A stretch of DNA of 64,000 bases from Magallana gigas (Eukaryota). The notes under the pieces were generated by a model, which was not told where the DNA came from, ran no database searches, and saw nothing but the letters and a program-made list of their open reading frames with translations. The stretch is from assembly GCF_963853765.1 (NCBI RefSeq), contig NC_088854.1, positions 27,528,001-27,592,000 of the forward strand, written 5' to 3'. Both the position numbers and the translations under genes were made by a program. Positions 19,332 to 62,888 of the stretch are shown here, piece after piece; position 1 is the stretch's first letter, and each line of letters opens with the position of its first letter.

Positions 19332-22300
19332 CTAGTCTTCTAGATATTCCACATAATACTGGGATTCTCGCAGGTAGTCTTTGATACTTGTTGGAATGGG
19401 CAGTCGGTCTATGTGATCTCGACGCACAATCTGAAGAATCTGGAAACGACACATATGTTGAAGAGACTGCATTTGGCGAAATCGTGAAACCGGGTGAAGG
19501 AGATGAACGGGCATGGGAGGGGCCCCAGGACCAGAGGGGCGAATGAAGTACAGGAATTGTCCGTTACGTGAATTCCTGACGCACTGTTCAATGAACTCTT
19601 TGATGGTAGATTTCCCTAGTGAATCTGGCTGGGACCAAAAGCTGAATTTACCTGGAATAAAATTGACCATCACCATTGAATAAAATTGAATATTATATAC
19701 ATGCTTTGCTTCAAAATTCAATTTGACAAAAAATCTTTTATCATTAAGCCAAATTTTATATGTAAAAGAAGTGAACGAAAAAAAATATACATTGTCCATG
19801 TAAATGGATTAAATTTTCAAATTTTATGTACATATGTATTAAAACATTCTTCGTTAAAAAAACTGAATTGACAAATTTCAATAGTTTTCTGTCCCTTGTG
19901 CAAAACAAAAATAAATTCATCCACCTACTGGTAAATATAATCTTCATGGATTAAATACTAAAAGCATTACCTTTAAGTTTATGAATAACTGATAATTACA
20001 TGTAGAGTGTAATTTAAACTTGTAGAAAGTAAAAGGCTTCGTTAATTTTGTTTTATTTTTGGCATTTGCGTACCTTTGTGGTGCTCTATCCGAGTATGGT
20101 GGACATGTCCATTCATGTTGAAGGACAGACTGAGAATGTAGCGCTCATCCGAGCTGTCCCTCACCAGGAACGACCCATCAGGCTTATTCAGGAGCTTGAT
20201 CTCTGCCTCATCCCAGCTAAGAGGGCCCCAGTACCAACCACACTAACCAAAGTGATAGAGCCAATTTGATTTATCAGTATACAGTAAAAAATACATGTAC
20301 GATTACAATGGACAGATATTATATTCTTTTTTATAAAATGCTTACTTTAAAAACCTTATTGACACAATAAATTTAAGTACATGAACATTATTTGTTCAGT
20401 GTAAATTGCATTGACATCCATTCCACTTACATCTTTCAGCTGTTTCATGCTATCAAGGAAGTCTTTTCTGCATCCTGTGAATTTAAGAAAAAATTGTATT
20501 TTCTTAATAATTCAGTATCATGAGGATTTAAAATACAAAAAAATAGTTGTGATTTTATAAAAATCATGCTGATATTAAGTGAAAATTGTGTTTTAATATG
20601 AAAGGAATTTCTTACTTATATCTGAATTGGGGTTAAATCTAGGAATTTCTGGTAGTGTGACTGGCTCAACAAAACTTGATTTGGCCTTGACGTCTCGCAA
20701 TGGTTTGTCACCAGATGTCTCAGATTTGACCATTTTAGTTTCCACAAGATCCTTGTGCACATTTTCACTGTCTAAAGACTTAGCCATTCCCATGGGGTAA
20801 GTCCTTCTGGCTTCAGGGTTCTTATGAACAGCGGTCTGTCTCAGACTACTGTCTCTGACCTTGACACCAGATAAACTACTACTTTTGACCTGAGATGAGT
20901 TACCAGAACACTGCTGCCTTATGCTGGAAGATTTCCCTTCCTTTTGCTTCCTTTTCTGTCTTTCTTTCTCCCTGCTATGTTTATTGTACTTTTCTTTCAT
21001 GCCCAATTCTGAAAGACTCATATGCACAGGTTCTTCATCATAGTAATAGGAGGGAATGCTTTTATATGGCAGTCCTTTGGGTCTCCATCTGACTTCTGCC
21101 TCTTCATCCAGTATATCTTGTGCATTGTCAGTTTTGGGATCACCACCTATTGCCCCTATTGGCAGTTTCATCATTTCTGCAGTGTCCTCTGAAGCACTAG
21201 TTTCCATTTCCGACTGTGAGGGGGTCACGTCTGTGTTTGAAGCACTATTTTGATCACATCCTAAATCTGCCTCTGTGATGATCAAACTTCCAGCCAGACT
21301 TCCTTGATTGACATCAGAACACTCTGAGTATCCATCATCTGGTTGTCTAGGAAGAGCGTCGACATCTGCATCAGCAAAGGGTATTTCCTCCCAAGATTTT
21401 ACACCTGAGCTGCTCATTGGAGTGTCTTCATTCACTACTTCACTACTGTTATCATTCACAGCTCGTTCATATTCCAGCAGGTTTTCAATAGAAGACACAC
21501 CAGATGGAATGGCCTGGCTATGGAGACTTTCCAACACAAAATCAGCATCATCTTCATATGATGTCCCCAAAGGAGACTTGTACTGAGCTGGAGACACCGA
21601 ACTGTTTATGGACTCGGTATGTTGCTTTAATGGAGTGCTTTCGGATTCTTCTAATTGTGTAGCTGCAAAATTGTCCAAGGGCTGATGATCAGTCAGATCT
21701 GATTGTTTTACCAGTTCTGGATTCGAAGTTTCAAGAGTCTCTGAGACTAGCTGCTCAGCAGATGAAGTAAAAGAATTGATATTTGAGATTGGCTGATCTA
21801 AAGATATACTTAGGTCAGTTATAGCACTATCTGTTTTTGCACTGCTTGCATTTCTGACATCACTAAACATTTCTAAGTTCTCACAAGCTTTTTCACTAGC
21901 ACTACCATCAGTTTCTAAGTCTTCTGTGTAAGTTTCACAAACACTATTAGACGACACAACATTTTCTGATAATGAGTCAAAATGATTCATAACTTGAGCA
22001 AAAAAATCAGTTCCAGAGGAAGAATTATGAATTCCACTATCTATTTGCAAATCTTTTACATCTTCATAGGGTCTCTCTTTCCTTATATAAGATGGATATG
22101 GCACTGAACACATGTCGTCTGCTTCACATTGTGAATTGTTAATATCGTGATCTTTAATTTCCTCATAAATCCTTTCTCTTCTCCTATAAGGAGCCTTTGA
22201 GGAGCCACCACATGTTGAATACCCGTTGCCCTCTCCATCCATTGGATCAGGCCTCACTGAAGAACTCCCACAAGCTGAATATCCATTGCCCTCGTCATCC

Positions 22301-23771
22301 ATTGGATCAGGTCTAACTAAAACACTCCCACAAGTTGAATAGCCATTGCCTTCCTCATTCATCAACTCAGGCCTCACTTCGGTTGATTCTGAATTTGTCT
22401 CCTGAGAAACAAAACAGTTCTGTTCAACAACATGAGTAGAATGAACGAGTATGTTGTCCTCACTACAAGTTTCTTCTGAACCCAGGTCGTCCTGAGCCTG
22501 AACACTGTACTGTCTCTCTGGTAAAGGTGGAGGCTCTTTCTCCACACTTTCCTCCCTATTTATAGCACTACTGGACCTGACTGTGTCTTTCCTTTCTCCA
22601 CTTTGCTTGGTTTTGTTGTGAACTATTGATGGGTTTGCATACACATCCTCTGTTTCTTTCCAAACCACTCCTCCCTGAGAAAGACAATTTTCTGATTTGT
22701 TTGGCGAACCCATCTTTGCTGATTGTAAAGAGTTGTCATGGTGGAGAGGGCAACTTCCAGAACGCACACTTAAAAGATTTGAAGTCAAGTTTGGCAGAAG
22801 GTGGTTTCCCACATCCAGATGTTGACTGTTTGGTCGATTCACATCTAAAATATTTTTTTTTAATTTCATCATTAAAAATAAATTCATCTATTTTCATCAA
22901 AAATGAATTCATCTATTCAAAAGTACAAATACATTTATATTTTTTTTTATTATATGATGTACCTCCTGTGTTAAATGAAGACAATTGCTGACTTAAACAC
23001 CAAAAATATGAAGAAAATGCAAGTAGAAAAGATTACATGTGACAAACCTGTGTGACTCAAATTTGTGCTTCTTCTTTTCCTGGCACTGATCTCAAGCTCG
23101 TTTTCCCCTCCCCGAGCCTCAGCCTGACCCCCTGCTGACTGAGTTCGTCTATGAGTTTGTATTGCTGGTTGACTCTTAGCTTCCTCTTCCTCTTCTTTCA
23201 ACTTTTTAAGCTTCAAATTTTTCATTTTTTCTCGTACCTCGTCCAGAGTTTCATACCCTGGATCCATGTCATCCAAAGGGATGGGCTCCTCCTTACCCCC
23301 ATCGTCCAAGTCTATACCTGCACCATCGGATACTATGAAGTCATTTGACACCTCCAAACAGGACGCCATGGGGCTTTTATCCTGAGGGGGCAAGACCTCT
23401 GTGATTTCCTTTGAATGCCTGGAACGCCTGAGTTTGGGAAATGCCCCGTTTTTCTTCCTCATTTCAACAGGTTTCTGGTAGCTACGGTCAGACTGACTTC
23501 TCCTTACATCCACTCTGGCAAAAGGTCCTTGAGATGGTGTCTCCTTGTGCTCAGGAGACAGTTTCCTCTTAAAGTACAGTCCTTCCACATTCTGAGCATC
23601 TGGAAATTCTGAATCTGTATCACGGTTACGAAAACGTAGCTTCTGCACGAGTCGCCCAAAGAGACTTCTATTAAAGGAGGGAGATGACAGTTTGTTTCTC
23701 TGGTTCCCTGGCTTTGGGGGTTGAGTTCTAGGGGGGAGGGTGGCTGATTTCTGACTTTGTCCAGTTGCCAT
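19332..23771 (-). CDS. SOCS7: Suppressor of cytokine signaling 7-like, 1161 aa, long disordered N-terminus + SH2 + SOCS box
   Basis: Five coding exons 23771-23048, 22844-20616, 20474-20431, 20242-20074 and 19651-19332, all GT-AG and phase-consistent (3486 nt). SH2: DCGWYWGPLSW...GSFLVRDSSDERYILSLSF. C-terminus FLYFIRPSGPGAPPMPVHLLHPVSRF..QSLQHMCRF..LPIPTSIKDYL is most like the SOCS7 SH2 end plus SOCS box. Confidence 0.9.
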
Positions 23772-34154: not shown

Positions 34155-37100
34155 ATGGGGAGTTCATCATCCAAGTTTCGCAAACACCTGAGCAATGGAG
34201 ACGAAGTTGCAGCACTTCATCTCTATAACAACAACAGCGACCTCAGGAAGGGACTTGACCCAAACTGTTCATATGGCGACCATCACAACCATGAAACTCC
34301 TTTACATTATGCAGCCAGACATGCAATGAAAAGTCTTTTAAGGTTGTTATAATCAATGAATGCAAGAATTTGTTTTTAATAAAAATTGGCTGGTTAGTCA
34401 AAGTTGATTGAATTTTTTTTCGACAAAAAGGAAGATAACTTATTTCCCAACTTCAGAAAGATTATACTAAACAAATGTCTACAACCTGGGAAAATAGTCT
34501 TTGAAAAATATTGTGTTTTATATTTGAAAAAAAACTAAGATTTTTTAAAGAAATATTTTCCTTTTTTCAGGATTTTCCTGCATGACCATAGTGGTAATCC
34601 TAACAAAACAAATGGAAAAAAGGAAACCAGCCTGATCTGTGTTTGTATGGAAAAGCCAGAAAATGCCCAGTTTTACCCTGTTCAAAGGAAGAGACTAGAC
34701 TGTCTAATGATCCTGTTGAAGTGGAGAGGATCAGAAACAGAGGGAGGAGATAAAGAAAAAGTAGACCTTGGCTCCCAAGATGAGGTATAGGAAAATGTTA
34801 TGCAAAGCCCATAACAAATTTTTCCAAAAATAAAAGGGGAGGACGAGAAAACCCTTGCTGGTTGTTAATTTATATGTTAAGGTTAACTTCATAATAATTT
34901 TCAAATTGTGATGAAAATATGTTTCAAATTAAGCACTAAGTTTAATTTGTTTTGTTTTTGCAGAATGACAACACAGCGCTTCATTATGCAGCATTATCTG
35001 GACTGAAATACTGCGTAGAAGTAAGTCTATGTGCAAATTTGCAGTTATATTTTAAGAAGCATTCACGTTATCTTTTTTTTAAAATTTAATTCAACAATTA
35101 CGGTATGAATATATATCGAAACTAGCTAAATGTGATATTAGAAGTTGCAGATATTGGCGTCAATATTGTATTGTAGCCAAATTGCATTCAAGTATATGTA
35201 AGATTGTAGATCATTTGAGATTCCTTTTTGTTCAATGACATTTCTTTATGCCTGCAGAAATTAGTCCAGTCTGGTGCCCCACTGTTCACAGAGAACAAGG
35301 AAAGGCAGACACCATGTGACTGTGCAGAGCAAGGCGGCCACGCCGAGATAGCCCTGTACCTAGAGTCCAAGATGGTCTTCTCCGTAAGTCGGCCATCTTG
35401 CCTCTTGGGCCATTAAACTCAAGCTCAATTTTTATGTCAGTCTCGCTCCTCCTTTATATATGCCTTCTGTAAACAGTACATGTACCAGTAAGCTTGACTA
35501 AGTTTTATGACTTCTGAGTTTCTGCTTCATGTATAGAACAAAATTGAAAAAACATATGTATCAGTAAGTATATGTACTGGTATCTGTGAATGATTTTGAG
35601 TTGTAAATTACACAAGTTTTCATATTGGTTTTTTTTTTTTTTTCAGAGTGTTGGTAATGAAGATGAAGCTGAAGATGTGACATCTATTGTGGAAACTGAG
35701 GTACATGTACAAGGAACTGATTCATTATTGTGTGAATCAAGTTCAAATTAAAAGTTACTTTCTTTGAATTGTCAGATTGCATTTGGATATGTAAAAAATA
35801 AAATCTCCAATGCCATATGTTATAGCAGAGAGTTGCAGTTAGGGATTTTGGGTTTTTCAATTTTTATTAAACCCTAATTTTCAAAGCTAAAAATGATATG
35901 AATTTTGCTCATCCTGAGTTCATTCAATTTATTAAGTGTTAATGATTCTGTTAGTTTATTGAAGATTTTATGTAAGATGACCTCACAATAAAATCTGTGT
36001 TTACAGGAGTACAGTGGATTACGGGCCCAGGATTTACAGGAGGCAAAGGATCAGCTTCTGGTGGAAACTGCAGACATGTTAAGTGTTCCCCTGTTTACAG
36101 CCGAAGCACTGCTCCGAAATTATGGTCAGTTGTTTCAAAGGTTATCAAATTCACTGTTAATTTGTTTTAATGAACGACAACAAAGTCATTTTTTTTTCAT
36201 AGACTGTTGGTACATGTTCATGTAAAAAATTTAAGATACATATAGGATTTTTTTTAATGTGAATTTCATGGTAATTATCATTCTGTGATTCTAGGGTTAG
36301 TACATGTACCAAAACAATTAAAAGTTTGCAGATTTTATTTGTCTTTTGTAGTTTTTTTCAAAGTGAACCTTACCAAACTCTTCAGTATTTTGTACATAAT
36401 GCTCCCACAAGGATCCCATTTGTTAGGATTGCATGAATGAATATCTGTAACATTATATAAAGTTCTCATAACTTGGAATTATTTTATTCTATACAACTAC
36501 AATTTTGTTCTTGTACAATTGTAGAATGGTCCCGGGAGATGTTGCTGGAGGCGTGGATGACGGACCCAAAGCACTGCTGTGAGAAATCCGGGGTCCACCC
36601 TCCCTCCAGTATTTTCTGTGATAAACCAGTCGTTCAGCACTCCCTTCACACAGATCAGCCCCGGTTAGAGACACAGCAGAAGTGCACTGGAATTGTAAGA
36701 ACATTTCTTAATGTAATAATGTTTTTTACCAGCAAACACTTTGCTAGAAATCGTTATTGTCGGTAAAATCATGTGGTTTTTTTTTTTTCAAAATAAAGAA
36801 ATTTTGCTTAAGATATTCTGAAGGTTTTTGGGGGTGGGGGGGTTTTGAGTGAATGAAAAGACCCATTCTCTTCATGGTTTGTTCTTTTTCTTTTTTTTTG
36901 TTTTATTCTTGAATTACTCAACATGTTTATTATATTTTACAGTGCGATATCTGCATGGATTCCTTTGTAATGTCGGACTCTCATGTTGGAATGACCTGTG
37001 ACCATGTGTTCTGTAAAGACTGTTGGAAAGAGTAAGAGTCAAATATTTAATAAAAAGACATTAATACTAAATGAGAGTCAACATCTTCCTAGGTTTATAT

Positions 37101-40100
37101 CTTTAATAATAAGGATGACTGATACCTGAAATATATATATACACAGTACATTAGTAAATGATTAGTTATCTCCTCCCCCGGGGACAAGTTTTTTTTGTAT
37201 ACAAAAAAAAAACTTAAACAAATAAAGTCAAGTCTATTAGAAAATAAATCTTCAGGAATGTTCTGTTAAAGTCTTCCGGACGCGAACAAGATTAAACGTA
37301 TGATGTCCTTTCACAATTTTAAACGCAAAGTCTCTAGATTCACTTATCAATGTCTATGCATAATTCATTAATCAGTTCCTGATTCATCAATGTTATGTTC
37401 TGTTGTGTTGCGGCGGGGCGGTCTTCGTGGTGTCAATAGTTCCTTTTCTCCAGCTTTATTGTGTGGCTGAAGACGGGATAGAGCACGTGGTATCCTAGAC
37501 TTAGAAGGTACATCTGGTTCAGGGGTGTGGTGGAATGACTGGTCCAAATCTATTTGTGTAGGCTGTTGAATTGTCTGAGTCTGAGTCGCCTGTTTTTGAG
37601 TGGGGACTATAATAGGTGTCTCATTCAATGCAGCTGGTTGACTTAAGATTCTTGTTGGTGATAAAGACACTGGAATCTTGGGCACTTGTGGCTGTGTCGT
37701 CTTGGATGTAGTTGGAGAGCTCAAGATCACTTCTTGATGTTGAACTGCAGTTGGTGCCATCAAAGTACCTTGTGTTTGGTTGGTTTGAAAAGGAGTGAAC
37801 TTTCGTAAGTGTTGGCGGTTGCGGATAGTTACTCGGCCTGTGCCATCTACACGTATAACATACTGGTGGTATTGGCGTACTTCAACAACTGTTCCTGTAC
37901 GTTCCCATCTCCTGGGATGGTTGCCTACCAAGTTTTGAATGTATACATGATCTCCAACCTGTAGTGTTGGCAGGTGATGAGTGTGTTCATTCCACCGTTC
38001 ATGTTCCCTTGAATGACGTTTGGCAAGAGCCATCTCTCGATGAGACATTAACTCAGTCCATGTTTCATGTGGAGAATATCTACCCATCAGTATGGGAATG
38101 GCATCACGAATGGGTCGTCCAAACAGAATCAATGCTGGTGATGCTTTTGTCTCTGGGTCAATCGAATTTCTGTACATCAGTAAAGCTCTCTGGAATTTGT
38201 CAACATCCAGAGATCCAACAGCAGAAATGTTGTCCACCAGCATGCGTTTTACTGTCTTTACCGCAATCTCAGCCCTGCAGTTAGCGTGTGGGTTTGCAAC
38301 TGATGAAAGTCTATGACGAACTCCCCAGGCTTTTAAAAACTCTTGAGTCTTCCCTGCTGTGAACTGTGGACCTCCATCAGACGTCAACTCCTCTGGGATG
38401 CCAAATGTCACGAAAGTCTCACGAAGTCTCTTGACAAGTCCTTCTGCACCTGATTCAGACTTGTATACCATTGGCCAGTTTGAATACCTGTCAACAATAA
38501 CTACATAGTCATTACTGTTATATGTGAAGTAGTCACTGCAAATCATCTGGAATGGATAATCTGGAGGTGTTATGTCAGATGGTGGCTGCATAGGGTTTGA
38601 CTTGGCCATCTGATGGCAGTGAACACACTGGTCTCTCACCCTGGCAATATCTACTGTGATCTCAGGCCAATATACAGAGTCCATAGCCCTTGCACGCATA
38701 GCGCTGACTCCTTGGTGGGCTGCGTGTAAAGCATCGAGTACTGGTTTGCGAAGAGCTGGAGGTATAACAATTCGTTGGCCCATAAGAACTACACCATCCA
38801 CGGTGCATAAACTGGATGCAAAGCGGTGGTAAGGACGCAAGTCTGTTGGTAGCTCCTTGTAGTCTTCTGGGAACCCTGCTTCCATCTGCCTGATGAGATT
38901 TACAAATGTAGGGTCTGATGCAGTGGCCTCACGAACCATGCTCCAAGTAACAACTGTGATAACAGCATTCAAGGCACAAGTGGCAGCAGCAACTGTGGAG
39001 GTGTCATTAGCTGTATCATTATCCTCTGTATGTAGACATAGACTGGTAAGTGCATCATGATAATGAGCAGTCATGTTAACTAAGGAATCAAGTTCAGGTG
39101 CTTCACCAGGTAAGTTCAGACGATCTGGTGGTCCAACAGGATACCGTGACGCTGCATCTGGCCCAAGGTTCTTTCTGCCTGGTACATGAATAATCGTGAA
39201 CCTGTACCCTAAAGTTTTCTCTTTGAGGTTGAGGAGTCGTCTGTTGTCGATGTCCGTGAGCGATCGATCGTTCAGAATCTGGAGTAGTGGCTTGTGGTCA
39301 GTTGCAACAAGAAGGTCTTTGCAACCAAGAACATAGTAGCGTGTTTGGTGAAGTGCATACACAACAGCCAAGGCCTCACCTTCAATAGGAGCATATCTGC
39401 TTTCTGCTGGATGGGTGAATCTGCTGCCAACTAGACATAGTTTCCAACCGTCATTACAGCAGGTAGGGGTTTTACTTGAGCACTGACAGTACTTCTGCAT
39501 CAAAAAGAATCCAATTCCGTCAACAGACCAGTCGGTAGCTAGGCATGTCATACGAGCAGGGTCAAAAAGACGAACACCGTCCTTCATCTCCTGAATAATG
39601 ATCTCTTTAGATTTGTGAAATACTTCATCTAATTCATTTGTCCAGCAGAATGTTGTGGATGGTTTCAAAAGAGCACGAAAAGGTTTCATTTGTCTTGCCA
39701 TGGCAAATGCATATGCTCCTTGGTTTATAAGCCCAAACCAAGCTCTTGCACCAGTAATGTCAGTTGGTGTTGGGAAGTTGCTAATTGCATCTAGGAACTT
39801 AGTACTTGGTCGTATGTTTGTTAGAGTGATTGTAAGTCCTGCAAAATTGACAGTGTCTTGAGCAAATTGAAACTTCTTTGGGTTTAATGTAATGCCATTA
39901 CGAGCACACAGGTCGAGCCATTCACATGCCTGAAAAAATGCTGCTTCAATGGAGTTCGCCCACATACATGTGTCATCCACACATTTAACCTTGTCGTTGA
40001 AATTTGATATAATAGCATCAAATCGTTGATTGTAAGCGTCACCGCTGGCCATGAATCCCTGTGGAGCAACTTTGTACCTGTAGCGCCCCCATGGTGTGAT

Positions 40101-43100
40101 GAATGTTGTAAAGTGGCGATCTTCTTCACGAATAGGCACTGAGTGGTACCCATTCCAAGCGTCTGTCACTGTTTTTTTCATACCTTGAGGGACACGGTCA
40201 GCCAGATGAAAAGGACTTGGGACATGATGTGTTTGCCGAACAGAATGTCGATTTTGTGGTTGTAGGTCTACTGTCCGCCTTGGAGTGCCATCAGCCTTGC
40301 TGGTTACCACCATTCTTGAGCACCAAGTTGTAGGTGTGTTTTGACTTACTTGTTCCAGTACACCAATGCGAACATCCCTCTCAAGATCAGCATAAACTTT
40401 ATCCTGCCAATGGATAGGAACAAGTGCTGGTTTGTGGACTGCTACCGGTGTGGCATTAGGATCAACATGGAGTTGGAGAGGCTCACAATTCATAAGTGGT
40501 AGAGGTTGATGTTCACATACATTAAATGTTGTAGCACCATAGTAATCAAGAAGCCACTCTTTTAGTGACTCTACATGTTCCTCTGTGGCCTTCAGACCGG
40601 GTGGTAAAGATGTGGGAACAGGTGGTGGTGAAGGTCGACGTCTAGGACAAGAGCAGGTTGCATCTTCAGAGTTTTCCATAGATGCAGCAATGTTTGGAGA
40701 TGTGACTGTTGATACATTAGGAAAGTTAGTGTGAATAATTCCCAGAGATATGAGTGCTTCTCTGCAAATGAAAGCTTTTTCCATGGTATCAGAGACATAA
40801 CACAATAAACGTGTTGACATGGCACTGCTAGTAGCGTCTTTTGTTGTGATGCTTACTGCGACTGCTCCAATTACACCAAGGTCTTCCTTTATAGCTCCAC
40901 GCATTACAAGTTTGACTGGAAGGAGATCCTTTTCTGTTATTCCAAGATTGTTTGCAGATTGTAAAGGTATGATTGAACTCTGGCATCCTGTATCAGCCAC
41001 CATGGACATAGTGATTGTCTTTAGCTGAGAGGTGTCTTGAATGGGATGTCCAAACGATGCATGGTCCTTAGGTAGGGGTGTCATGTTCACCAGGAGCATT
41101 GGGTGTGGTTTTGAAGGTCTAGCCACCCAGTGTCCATCAAATATGTGATGTTCAAGACGTGATACTTGGTTTGTCTGTTCAGATGTAGTGCACAGCTGCT
41201 CATAGATATAACCAACTTGTTCTTGTTCTGGATCTTTGGTTGATTTCCCTTGATTGGGCGGGTTCCTGTGGCCCTTGCCTTGAGCGCAGATTCTAGAAGA
41301 TGCATCACGGTGGCCCCATACTCCACAGGTAGTGCACTTGCTGCATGATTTGGTGTAATGACCTTTGACTGTACATTTAGCACATGTGAATGTCCAAGCT
41401 TCACAGTATCTAGACCTGGCCTTGCGATCATTCCTCTGTCCGTGAGCAGGACCACCACAAGCCCAACATTTGGCTCCAGCTGCTTGCGGTCTTTTTTGAG
41501 TATTACATGTGGCACTCATGGCACTAGCTGAATCTCCTACTGCACTCCTTGTGACTTTACCCTGCTCTTTCTGAGCAATAAATGATACAGTCTCTTCTAG
41601 TGTTCTATCTGTCTTGGAGTCACCTAGCAGGTCAGACATAATTTCTGGGTCTGCAATACCTCTTACTAAATTGTCCTTGATTATCTCATCACTGTAGTCA
41701 AATATATGGTTGCAACCTAATTCTTTACACGTTGCTTTATACTGGCACAATGACGCTTGGCCTCTGAGACTGGCCAAAAAAGTTCTGATATTTGAACCAG
41801 GTGATTGAGTCATTCTGTTCAATTTTATGCGTTGGACCAGTGTGCTTTCTTCTTTGACGGCCAGCCTTTTGATTGCCTTTAAAAGATCTGTCTCTAGCAT
41901 ACTGGCAACATCACCTTGAAGGTCACGCATAATATCTGTACGCAGATAAGGGTCACAGCAGTAGAAAAGGGCTGTAGGCAAGACATTGTCTGTGATCGCC
42001 ATCCCTGTTTTGTACATCTTCCACTGTCTGGTGAATGCAGACCATTGATCTGGATCACATCCTGTGGCTATAGAAGGTGGGTCTAATTTTAACTTGTGCG
42101 TTGACGGTTGAGCCAGAGGTGGGTGGACGGTTCTGTCATGAATCTGTAGAGCAGTGGTTAGAGCAGCGGCAAATGCTTCATCCAGGTCCTGAGATTTCCA
42201 ATTACAGCCGTCTATAGGGCACTGTAGAACTGGCATTGTAAATTAACTGTGGTTAAGCTGTTAGTTGAGTATCAGTCATAAATGAGAGTCAACATCTTCC
42301 TAGGTTTATATCTTTAATAATAAGGATGACTGATACCTGAAATATATATATACACAGTACATTAGTAAATGATTAGTTAAATACATTAAAACCACGAAAT
42401 CTTGACAGCTTTCTTAGGAAATCTTGAGATATATTAGCAGATTATCCATTCTGGGTAGATGGCTATTTATCCTGAAAATAAACTAAACTAAACTTTATTT
42501 ATTTTACAACGATTGATAAACAAGTTCGACAACTTATATTAGTATCTCTCATTGGCCCGAATGTTAGCGTGAGGGGGTCATTGATGTGGGAGGAAGCCAG
42601 AGTGCTCGGAGAAAAGCCACGTGTCCAAGTGGGCAACCGCCATACCCTATCACATACAACCAATGTCGATCATGGGGATCGAACTCGGGTCGCAGCGGTG
42701 AGAAGCGAGTGCATTGTCCACCTCGCTACTAGGATACCCCTGAAAACAATAACATATGTAAAGATCATTAGGATTTTTATGCAGAAGCTTCTCGAACAGG
42801 CAAACACTGACACATATTTTTCTATTTTACAAATGTATGTAGGAGCATATTGAAAATGTTTGAACTGCGATTTGAAAAGGATTTATTGACCTGATTATGA
42901 GTAATTTTCTTTAAAACAGATATTTGAATCTCAAGATACAGGAAGGAGACGCCCACAACATCACGTGTCCTGCCTATCAGTGCGACAAACTCGCCCCTGT
43001 TGATCTGATTGAGGGCATCGTCTCGCGAGATATGGCTAGAAGATACCTCCAATTTGACATAAAGGTATTACAGATTTTTTTTTAAATCTAAATGGTACAC

Positions 43101-61194: not shown

Positions 61195-61913
61195 GAAAAT
61201 TTAAAGATAACATATATACCTGAGAGTAATTGTAGCAAAAAGAACCGAGATGTTAAGCATAAAAGTCAAGAAATGGTCGTTTGGTTAAGATGTATTTTTT
61301 ATTCAACACATTAAACAATCTTATAAATGACGGATGGTTAAACAAAAGTCTATAATACTCTTTGATTAAATATGAGTATATAGTTTATATACCCTAGGTC
61401 TGGAGACTGGGGATCAATTTGCATCGTATGATAGTTTTTAACACAAGAAATGCAAGTAAATGTTAACAAAAATTGTATGATAGATAATGTTTTCTTCCTT
61501 TTTGTTTGCACTAAAATTACGATTTCGAATTAGTCGCTTAATATTTGGTACTTACAACTTACACAGAGATCATCCTTTTTAAAAATATACAATTGATGAA
61601 AACCAACTACTCTCATGCGAAAATTCAAAATTGTTCGCAATACTCACAAAAGCTTCATCGGCGCAACGCATTCCGCAACGCAAACCAGTCTTCACATTTT
61701 TATCATCTTGGTCGCGATATTTAGTCGCATCAAACCAGTTGAACTCCGGTAAATCGCGAAATTAAGTCGTCGCAAATATAAATTGGTGCATAAACAGAGT
61801 ATATTTAATCATGCTAATTCGATAAGAAATATTCTTTATATATTTTACATCATTCAAAAGTGTCAGACTGCCAATCGAAATTGTTTTGTTTCACTTGTAG
61901 ATATATTATCTCC

Positions 61914-62888
61914 ATGAATTCAACAGCAATGAACAATATGTCAACAACCGACAACGAGAACAATGCTGAAAACTATCCCAGCATGCTTTGGATTGCTCCT
62001 ACGTCATTGGCCCTCCTCATCATAACCGGCAACAGTATGGTCATCGGCGCCTGTTTCCATTTCGCCAAAAGCCGAAGTTATACCTTAAATTTCATTTTAG
62101 CTTTGTCGGTCGCAGACATAGCAACGGGGATGGGTATGGTCTTTAATGTTTTTACAAGAATTAATGCGGATATTTTGTCTTACAAAATCCCATGCATTCT
62201 CTCCTACGAAGTTTTCTTCACTATGGCGTTGATTTCAGTAAACCTCCTGGCTTGTACCACATTTGATAGGTACCTTTCTATCTGCAAACACGAAAGGCAC
62301 AAACAGTGGAACACGAAAACAGCGGTGACGGCCCAGATCTACTGTTCCTATATTGTAGGCTTTATTGTTGGTGGCTTTCCATTTTTGGGACTAAATCGAT
62401 GGGAAAATGGAATGAAATGTGAATTCAAAGAGCTTTACCCACAGGAGTTGTATCTTGTAAAGGCTTCACTGATGTTTCTTGGATTTGGCGTCAGCTTCGT
62501 TCTCTATGTATTCATTTTACGAAAAGCATGGAGAATATACAGTGGTAGACACATTGAAGTCTTACATAATGCAATCGTGCGACAACGAAATAATTTTATT
62601 CAAGCAAAATTGATGGGCATCGTCACCATCTTGAATACGATTTGCTGGCTTCCTTACAGTTCCATTACTTTGGTGTTTGGAATTACTAATCAGTCGAACA
62701 GTGCTGGATACCTGGATTTTGCTCTCTTGCTTTTGGGCTTCACCAATTCCTTGATTAATCCTATCATATATGCCTGGAATCGACCCGACTTTCGCGCTTT
62801 GTGGAAGAAACAGTTTCGTTGCAGACCACAAGTTGAAAACTCTGATGAAGTTCGACCTACCATTATCTTTGTTCAAAGTTATTGCTAA
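61914..62888 (+). CDS. Class A (rhodopsin-like) GPCR, 324 aa, intronless CDS, orphan
   Basis: Seven hydrophobic segments. GNSMV in TM1, LSVAD in TM2, TFDRY in TM3, CWLPY in TM6, NSLINPIIYAW in TM7. An acceptor tcacttgtag ends at 61900, so the real ATG is at 61914, with N-glycosylation sequons NST and NMS. Confidence 0.92.
   Translation: MNSTAMNNMSTTDNENNAENYPSMLWIAPTSLALLIITGNSMVIGACFHFAKSRSYTLNFILALSVADIATGMGMVFNVFTRINADILSYKIPCILSYEVFFTMALISVNLLACTTFDRYLSICKHERHKQWNTKTAVTAQIYCSYIVGFIVGGFPFLGLNRWENGMKCEFKELYPQELYLVKASLMFLGFGVSFVLYVFILRKAWRIYSGRHIEVLHNAIVRQRNNFIQAKLMGIVTILNTICWLPYSSITLVFGITNQSNSAGYLDFALLLLGFTNSLINPIIYAWNRPDFRALWKKQFRCRPQVENSDEVRPTIIFVQSYC

Follow-up and report, generated by a model that had tools for sequence, protein, structure and literature searches.

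How does an LTR retrotransposon begin reverse transcription when the primer-binding site (PBS) adjoining its 5' LTR lacks the TGG of a tRNA-type site and instead complements a stretch of the LTR itself? This question is raised by an element on the minus strand of a 64,000-nt stretch of the Magallana gigas genome, referred to here as the window. Self-priming is usually regarded as a hallmark of one chromovirus lineage, and to our knowledge experimental proof of self-primed reverse transcription is limited to fission-yeast elements. An earlier note on this DNA had nonetheless proposed that the element primes itself, as an LTR retrotransposon outside the chromoviruses. Our analysis indicates that the element most probably starts reverse transcription with its own RNA in place of a tRNA, an arm of the LTR folding onto the PBS. 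The observations that carry this reading are the complementarity of the two sequences, their exact position relative to the LTR border, covariation across a deep clade, a PBS that is not of the tRNA type, a protein that contains no chromodomain and sister elements that are conventionally primed.

The element is a Ty3/gypsy LTR retrotransposon of 5312 bp (37068-42379, minus strand; Table 1). Two LTRs, a target-site duplication (TSD), a polypurine tract (PPT) and the domain order PR-RT-RNase H-IN place it in the Metaviridae (Ty3/gypsy). The best match to its protein in a search of solved structures is Ty3 Gag-Pol, and the other matches are to retroviruses only. The LTRs are direct repeats of 101 nt each that are 100% identical, and their borders are fixed by this perfect repeat together with the PPT preceding the 3' LTR and the 5-bp GTATT duplication on both sides. 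To judge by the identity of its LTRs, and by an ORF and a target duplication that are both intact, the element inserted recently, and it is apparently complete. A protein fragment labelled Mytilus edulis, found in the protein search, is 97% identical to the protein of the window element.

Table 1. Features of the window element (positions in the window; element sense is the minus strand)
Feature	Position	Strand	Basis or remark
Target-site duplication, upstream copy (GTATT on minus strand)	42380..42384	-	Same 5 nt outside both LTRs
5' LTR, 101 nt, starts TAAC, ends TTTA	42279..42379	-	Direct repeat; borders from TSD and PPT
Proposed self-primer arm, LTR positions 44-54	42326..42336	-	Exact complement; 28 distinct equivalents in relatives
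Candidate poly(A) signal ATTAAA, in the loop that separates the arms	42313..42318	-	
Primer-binding site TGACTGATAC, abuts LTR, no TGG	42269..42278	-	
gag-pol ORF, single, intact, unbroken, 1622 aa	37368..42236	-	Zinc knuckles, protease motif, RT, RNase H, integrase
Reverse transcriptase domain, aa 687-803	39828..40178	-	Pfam RVT_1; Ty3 RT ranks first among solved structures
RNase H domain, aa 865-996	39249..39644	-	Pfam RT_RNaseH and RT_RNaseH_2
Integrase zinc-binding and catalytic core domains, aa 1158-1316	38289..38765	-	Pfam Integrase_H2C2 and rve
Polypurine tract GGGGGAGGAGA, adjoins 3' LTR	37169..37179	-	Relatives have similar tracts ending GGAGA or GGGAGA
3' LTR, identical to 5' LTR	37068..37168	-	Direct repeat
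Target-site duplication, downstream copy	37063..37067	-	GTATT outside both LTRs

Other features of the window lie outside the element. Just upstream of it (42670-42745, minus strand) is a tRNA-like head with a box-B-like GAGTTCGATCCCC, for which neither ARAGORN nor Rfam returns a tRNA call; this is probably a tRNA-derived SINE beside the insertion site. Two adjacent minus-strand ORFs of 764 and 266 aa (20593-23771), which have no Pfam match and lie in a block with a G+C content of 0.40 versus about 0.32, may be part of another mobile element. A host GPCR gene is present on the plus strand as an intronless 342-aa ORF (61860-62885) that encodes a rhodopsin-family 7tm_1 domain (E 1e-30).

Read on the minus strand, the 5' LTR (42379-42279) ends in CATTTA and is followed, with zero spacer, by TGACTGATAC (42278-42269). 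The exact reverse complement of this sequence, GTATCAGTCA, occupies LTR positions 44-53 (42336-42327). The duplex is lengthened by one A-T pair between the last LTR base, 42279, and T 42326, and at its far end by one G-T wobble between 42337 and 42268. The earlier note had described a PBS that directly abuts the LTR without a TGG, a 10-nt complement at LTR positions 44-53, and extension by one A-T pair and one G-U wobble; every element of this description is correct on the sequence. A complement of at least 10 nt anchored at this position arises in 18 of 200,000 shuffles of the LTR (about 1e-4), and in 90 of 200,000 when offsets of 0-5 nt are allowed.

The protein search returned more than 2000 relatives, from which 87 loci were fetched. 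In the 64 loci that include the N-terminus, the sequence preceding the ORF was scanned for duplexes, to a maximum of 450 nt. Of these loci, 36 have an exact duplex of 10 nt or more whose 3' arm starts with the last LTR base followed by TG, versus 5 of 640 size-matched control windows taken from inside ORFs. This comparison is unbiased, while the loci used for the pair counts described below were preselected for an exact duplex, so that those counts are partly circular. No duplex of at least 9 nt was detected in 20 of the 64 scanned loci, and none starting at the last LTR base in 28; most duplex-negative loci had too little upstream sequence, and a few had more than 200 nt. A relaxed scan identified four further loci, each with one mismatch or wobble. 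Three more loci are of the self type: L014, in which the PBS starts TC; L085, which is degenerate and has one mismatch; and L065, a circularly permuted contig. The last of these was considered as a TGG-type exception and rejected, as its arm lies at the opposite end of the permuted contig and forms a 15-bp duplex. Among named hosts, the motif occurs in the bivalve of the window, in Mya arenaria and in a sea urchin, Diadema antillarum.

Some of the contigs call for separate comment. All loci were used as retrieved, including the runs of N in L009. Logan contig L001, the only one that resembles a transcript, encodes an identical protein; it stops 29 nt into each LTR, as a k=31 assembly graph would, and was set aside as evidence for RNA ends. 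Contigs with terminal overlaps were likewise rejected as transcripts, the overlaps being collapsed LTRs. A 98%-identical metagenome copy (L003:5296-5423) has the same PBS after its 3' LTR, and beyond this PBS an unrelated leader that is unique among the loci. This leader represents either a second, perhaps non-autonomous, element type that shares the LTR and PBS, or an assembly-graph chimera.

The arm and the PBS vary together. Among the 36 loci there are 28 distinct 11-mers, and in 36 of 36 the 11-mer matches the LTR of its own locus. Matches across loci occur in only 18 of 1260 pairs, all of them between loci with the same 11-mer or a near-identical arm. The Mya arenaria copy (L002, CP111012.1), which shares 88% amino-acid identity with the window element in RT-IN, has a 100-nt LTR in which one base of the arm departs from the window copy, a change that is compensated in its PBS. 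Covariation between LTR and PBS is also present in the close relatives L084 and L005. A single MAFFT alignment of the 28 leaders placed the 5' arms in three registers, and pair counts were therefore limited to the two subsets that MAFFT kept in register (alignment A3 was left out). In these two subsets 100% of the cells are paired, and both sides have changed in 8 of 11 and 7 of 11 pairs; none of 500 shuffles reaches the observed values, and slid registers pair at 19-56%. Covariation of LTR and PBS across diverged families was the check that the earlier note had named for its self-priming reading. The outcome is strongly positive, and the 28 distinct self-matching pairs, together with the compensatory double change in Mya arenaria, support that reading.

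The window element and the Mya arenaria copy also have recognisably similar 100-nt LTRs, and their hosts belong to distant bivalve orders. With 88% identity in RT-IN, this similarity suggests horizontal spread of the kind that has been reported for Steamer-like elements. In the Mya arenaria copy, one LTR contains an insertion of about 140 nt.

Across types, the duplex measures 10-16 bp and the loop 36-73 nt. The distance from the arm to the LTR end stays within 47-87 nt although LTR length spans about 100 to 413 nt, as expected of a variable U3 preceding a short R-U5. Complementarity ends abruptly in 25 of the 28 types; the first base is a purine, also in 25 of 28, and follows a T/C-rich stretch. 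In 11 of the 28 distinct leader types the loop contains a canonical poly(A) hexamer, versus 8.8% of shuffled loops. The abrupt end of the duplex at a purine, the constant distance and the loop hexamers fit an arm located at or near the 5' end of the RNA, as in Tf1. The window copy has an Inr-like TCAGT inside the arm and a TA-run just upstream of it, features that may leave room for a transcription start within or after the arm. Across leader types there is no conserved TATA box at a fixed distance from the arm.

Specific positions within this region are constrained. In the 28 distinct leader types (L002-L085), the 5' arm invariably ends in CA and is followed by T. The third base of the PBS, after TG, is A in 19 types, T in 6, C in 3 and G in none, so that 0 of 28 start with TGG. 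LTR ends are fixed as TA..TA by 5-bp target duplications in 8 insertions; the LTR terminus is TA in the window copy and most subfamilies, and CA in a few deep subfamilies.

Predicted RNA folds retain the pairing. Unconstrained minimum-energy predictions keep the arm-PBS duplex in 27 of the 28 types, with a mean z-score of -2.5, and the predicted fold of the window leader alone also has a z-score of -2.5. When the duplex is enforced, 26 of 28 types are predicted to form a helix immediately following the 5' arm, and 19 of 28 a hairpin of at least 4 bp ending at most 8 nt from the PBS arm. Pairing of post-PBS sequence into the loop, which would form one arm of a Tf1-like 'pretzel', is predicted in 1 of 28 minimum-energy folds.

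In a neighbour-joining tree of the RT-IN core, built from uninterrupted ORFs only, a split separates every locus whose PBS was determined as self-type from the TGG-type loci. The split is supported by 100 of 100 bootstraps, and by 91 of 100 after three further outside loci were added. Two of the outside elements were read directly; both have TGT..ACA LTRs and a PPT, and their PBS begins with TGGCGC. The Pfam Chromo model has no match in 13 clade members or in the 28 nearest outside representatives (33-40% identity), and none in the window protein, its C-terminal tail included, at E values up to 10. The absence of a chromodomain that the earlier note had reported for the window protein extends to these 13 clade members and 28 outside representatives. 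A self-type PBS that marks one clade, with closest sampled relatives that are chromodomain-less and conventionally primed, favours an origin of this self-priming clade separate from that of the Tf1/sushi chromoviruses. The earlier note's suggestion of an independent origin or a wider spread of self-priming is supported by the tRNA-type, chromodomain-less sister elements. Self-priming outside the chromoviruses is not entirely without precedent, having been predicted for the plant Ty1/copia TAR elements (PMC6317226). One sister-clade locus with a TGG-type PBS (L087:1-8578) is a head-to-tail array that repeats every 5441 nt and in which neighbouring copies share one LTR; this LTR contains a 19-nt tandem repeat.

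In the proposed pathway, an LTR stretch of 10-16 nt would fold back over a loop of 36-73 nt and pair with the sequence starting at the LTR border. The arm would be located where R starts, close to or exactly at the transcript's 5' end. If the element behaves as Tf1 does, its RNase H would cleave the arm behind the conserved CA, releasing a 3' end from which synthesis would proceed through U5 and R. Later, during plus-strand synthesis, the primer would be copied back into the PBS. Because of this last step the PBS would be rewritten from the LTR arm in every cycle, and the two sequences would stay matched while drifting. The steps of this model that we infer are the RNA start site, the cleavage and the action of the primer on the same RNA molecule.

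That last step invites an alternative in which the LTR arm does prime but is not the 5' terminus of the RNA being copied: the arm would be supplied by a co-packaged second RNA, by a read-through transcript or by the 3' LTR copy. Sequence alone cannot tell cis from trans, the arm is present in both LTRs, and we infer the position of the transcription start. The constant, short distance from the arm to the LTR end and the abrupt stop of the duplex at a purine nevertheless fit a 5' terminal arm, and the short loop and stable predicted fold favour fold-back within one molecule, which makes a primer acting in trans improbable. It is also conceivable that the stem is merely structural, with a role in packaging, dimerisation or translation control, and that the true primer is a host RNA. 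Retroviral leaders carry stems around the PBS, and priming is read here from sequence only. Yet the 3' arm begins exactly at the first base to be copied, with no spacer, a placement at the LTR border for which a merely structural stem has no need, and a host RNA would need to match 28 different sequences, none of which starts with TGG, whereas the sister elements keep a conserved TGGCGC-type site. We consider this explanation very unlikely.

A tRNA half or an internal tRNA fragment could prime the window element, as in copia or Ty5, the match to the LTR then being coincidental. No tRNA genes were found in the window (ARAGORN, Rfam) or in 36 of the loci (ARAGORN), so that the scanned sequences yielded no tRNAs to compare with the PBS. 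Matched changes in LTR and PBS, as seen in the Mya arenaria copy, L084 and L005, are unexpected of a site defined by a tRNA, and the chance level of the LTR match given above is low; a primer of this kind is extremely improbable. Self-priming by fold-back of the LTR arm remains the reading that we prefer, and it is compared with known systems below.

Self-priming has been demonstrated for Tf1 and inferred for Tf1/sushi elements, Tcn1 and plant copia TAR elements (PMC7175516, PMC10085805, PMC6317226). The window clade resembles Tf1, Tf2, Tj1 and the Tf1/sushi elements in that the PBS abuts the 5' LTR, complements RNA derived from the LTR of the same element (a stretch of about 11 nt in Tf1) and is not of the tRNA type, and it shares a single gag-pol ORF with many Tf1/sushi elements of fungi, vertebrates and non-seed plants (PMC7175516, PMC10085805, PMC4600332). 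Tf1/sushi elements have an integrase chromodomain and LTRs ending in CA, whereas the clade found here has no chromodomain and its LTRs mostly end in TA. Their leader forms a three-duplex 'pretzel', whereas the leader predicted here consists of a closing stem and two inner hairpins. The nearest relatives of the window clade are also of the tRNA type and its hosts are marine invertebrates, unlike those of Tf1/sushi. For the plant Ty1/copia TAR elements (Houba, Osr-1) and the Tcn1 clade, as here, self-priming was inferred from LTR-PBS complementarity without experiment (PMC6317226). TAR takes the predicted strategy beyond the chromoviruses (PMC6317226), but it belongs to another superfamily (copia); Tcn1 is a chromovirus, and the hosts of these elements are plants or fungi, not animals.

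In general architecture, the window clade is similar to Steamer, Steamer-like elements and SURL of the Mag lineage (bivalves, sea urchins), which are about 5 kb long with a single gag-pol ORF and short LTRs. The kinds of hosts are the same, and both groups show signs of spread between distant marine hosts. Steamer-type elements differ in having TGT..ACA LTRs and a 12-nt TGG PBS for tRNA-Leu or tRNA-Asn (PMC8905726, PMC11046912), and the Steamer PBS (PMC8905726) occurs at the PBS position of none of the fetched loci. The published LTR motifs of Mag A and C are likewise TGT..ACA (PMC3601003), whereas the LTRs of the window clade are mostly TA..TA and its PBS never starts with TGG. Dictyostelium Skipper resembles the window clade in that its PBS has no TGG signature, but it is a chromovirus and has no LTR-complementary stretch (PMC5006619). 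Self-priming in metazoan non-chromoviral gypsy elements is unreported in the searchable full text, a body of literature that leaves many older subscription-journal papers outside its coverage.

It is possible, if not quite probable, that a large, old and previously undescribed clade of chromodomain-less Ty3/gypsy elements in bivalves, sea urchins and metagenome hosts swapped tRNA priming for self-priming independently of Tf1/sushi, using a simpler stem whose length may reflect how far the cleavage site lies from the start of the RNA. If true, animals would harbour a second self-priming clade, rich in species and apparently independent, and the use of an element's own RNA as primer would be a recurrent solution. 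Self-priming would also explain why annotation pipelines that seek a tRNA-type PBS would call 'no PBS' for these common marine elements. With its dozens of natural compensatory variants, the clade would allow the requirements of the mechanism to be compared, and two of its traits, the CA-T that never varies at the predicted cut and the avoidance of TGG, can be set directly against Tf1.
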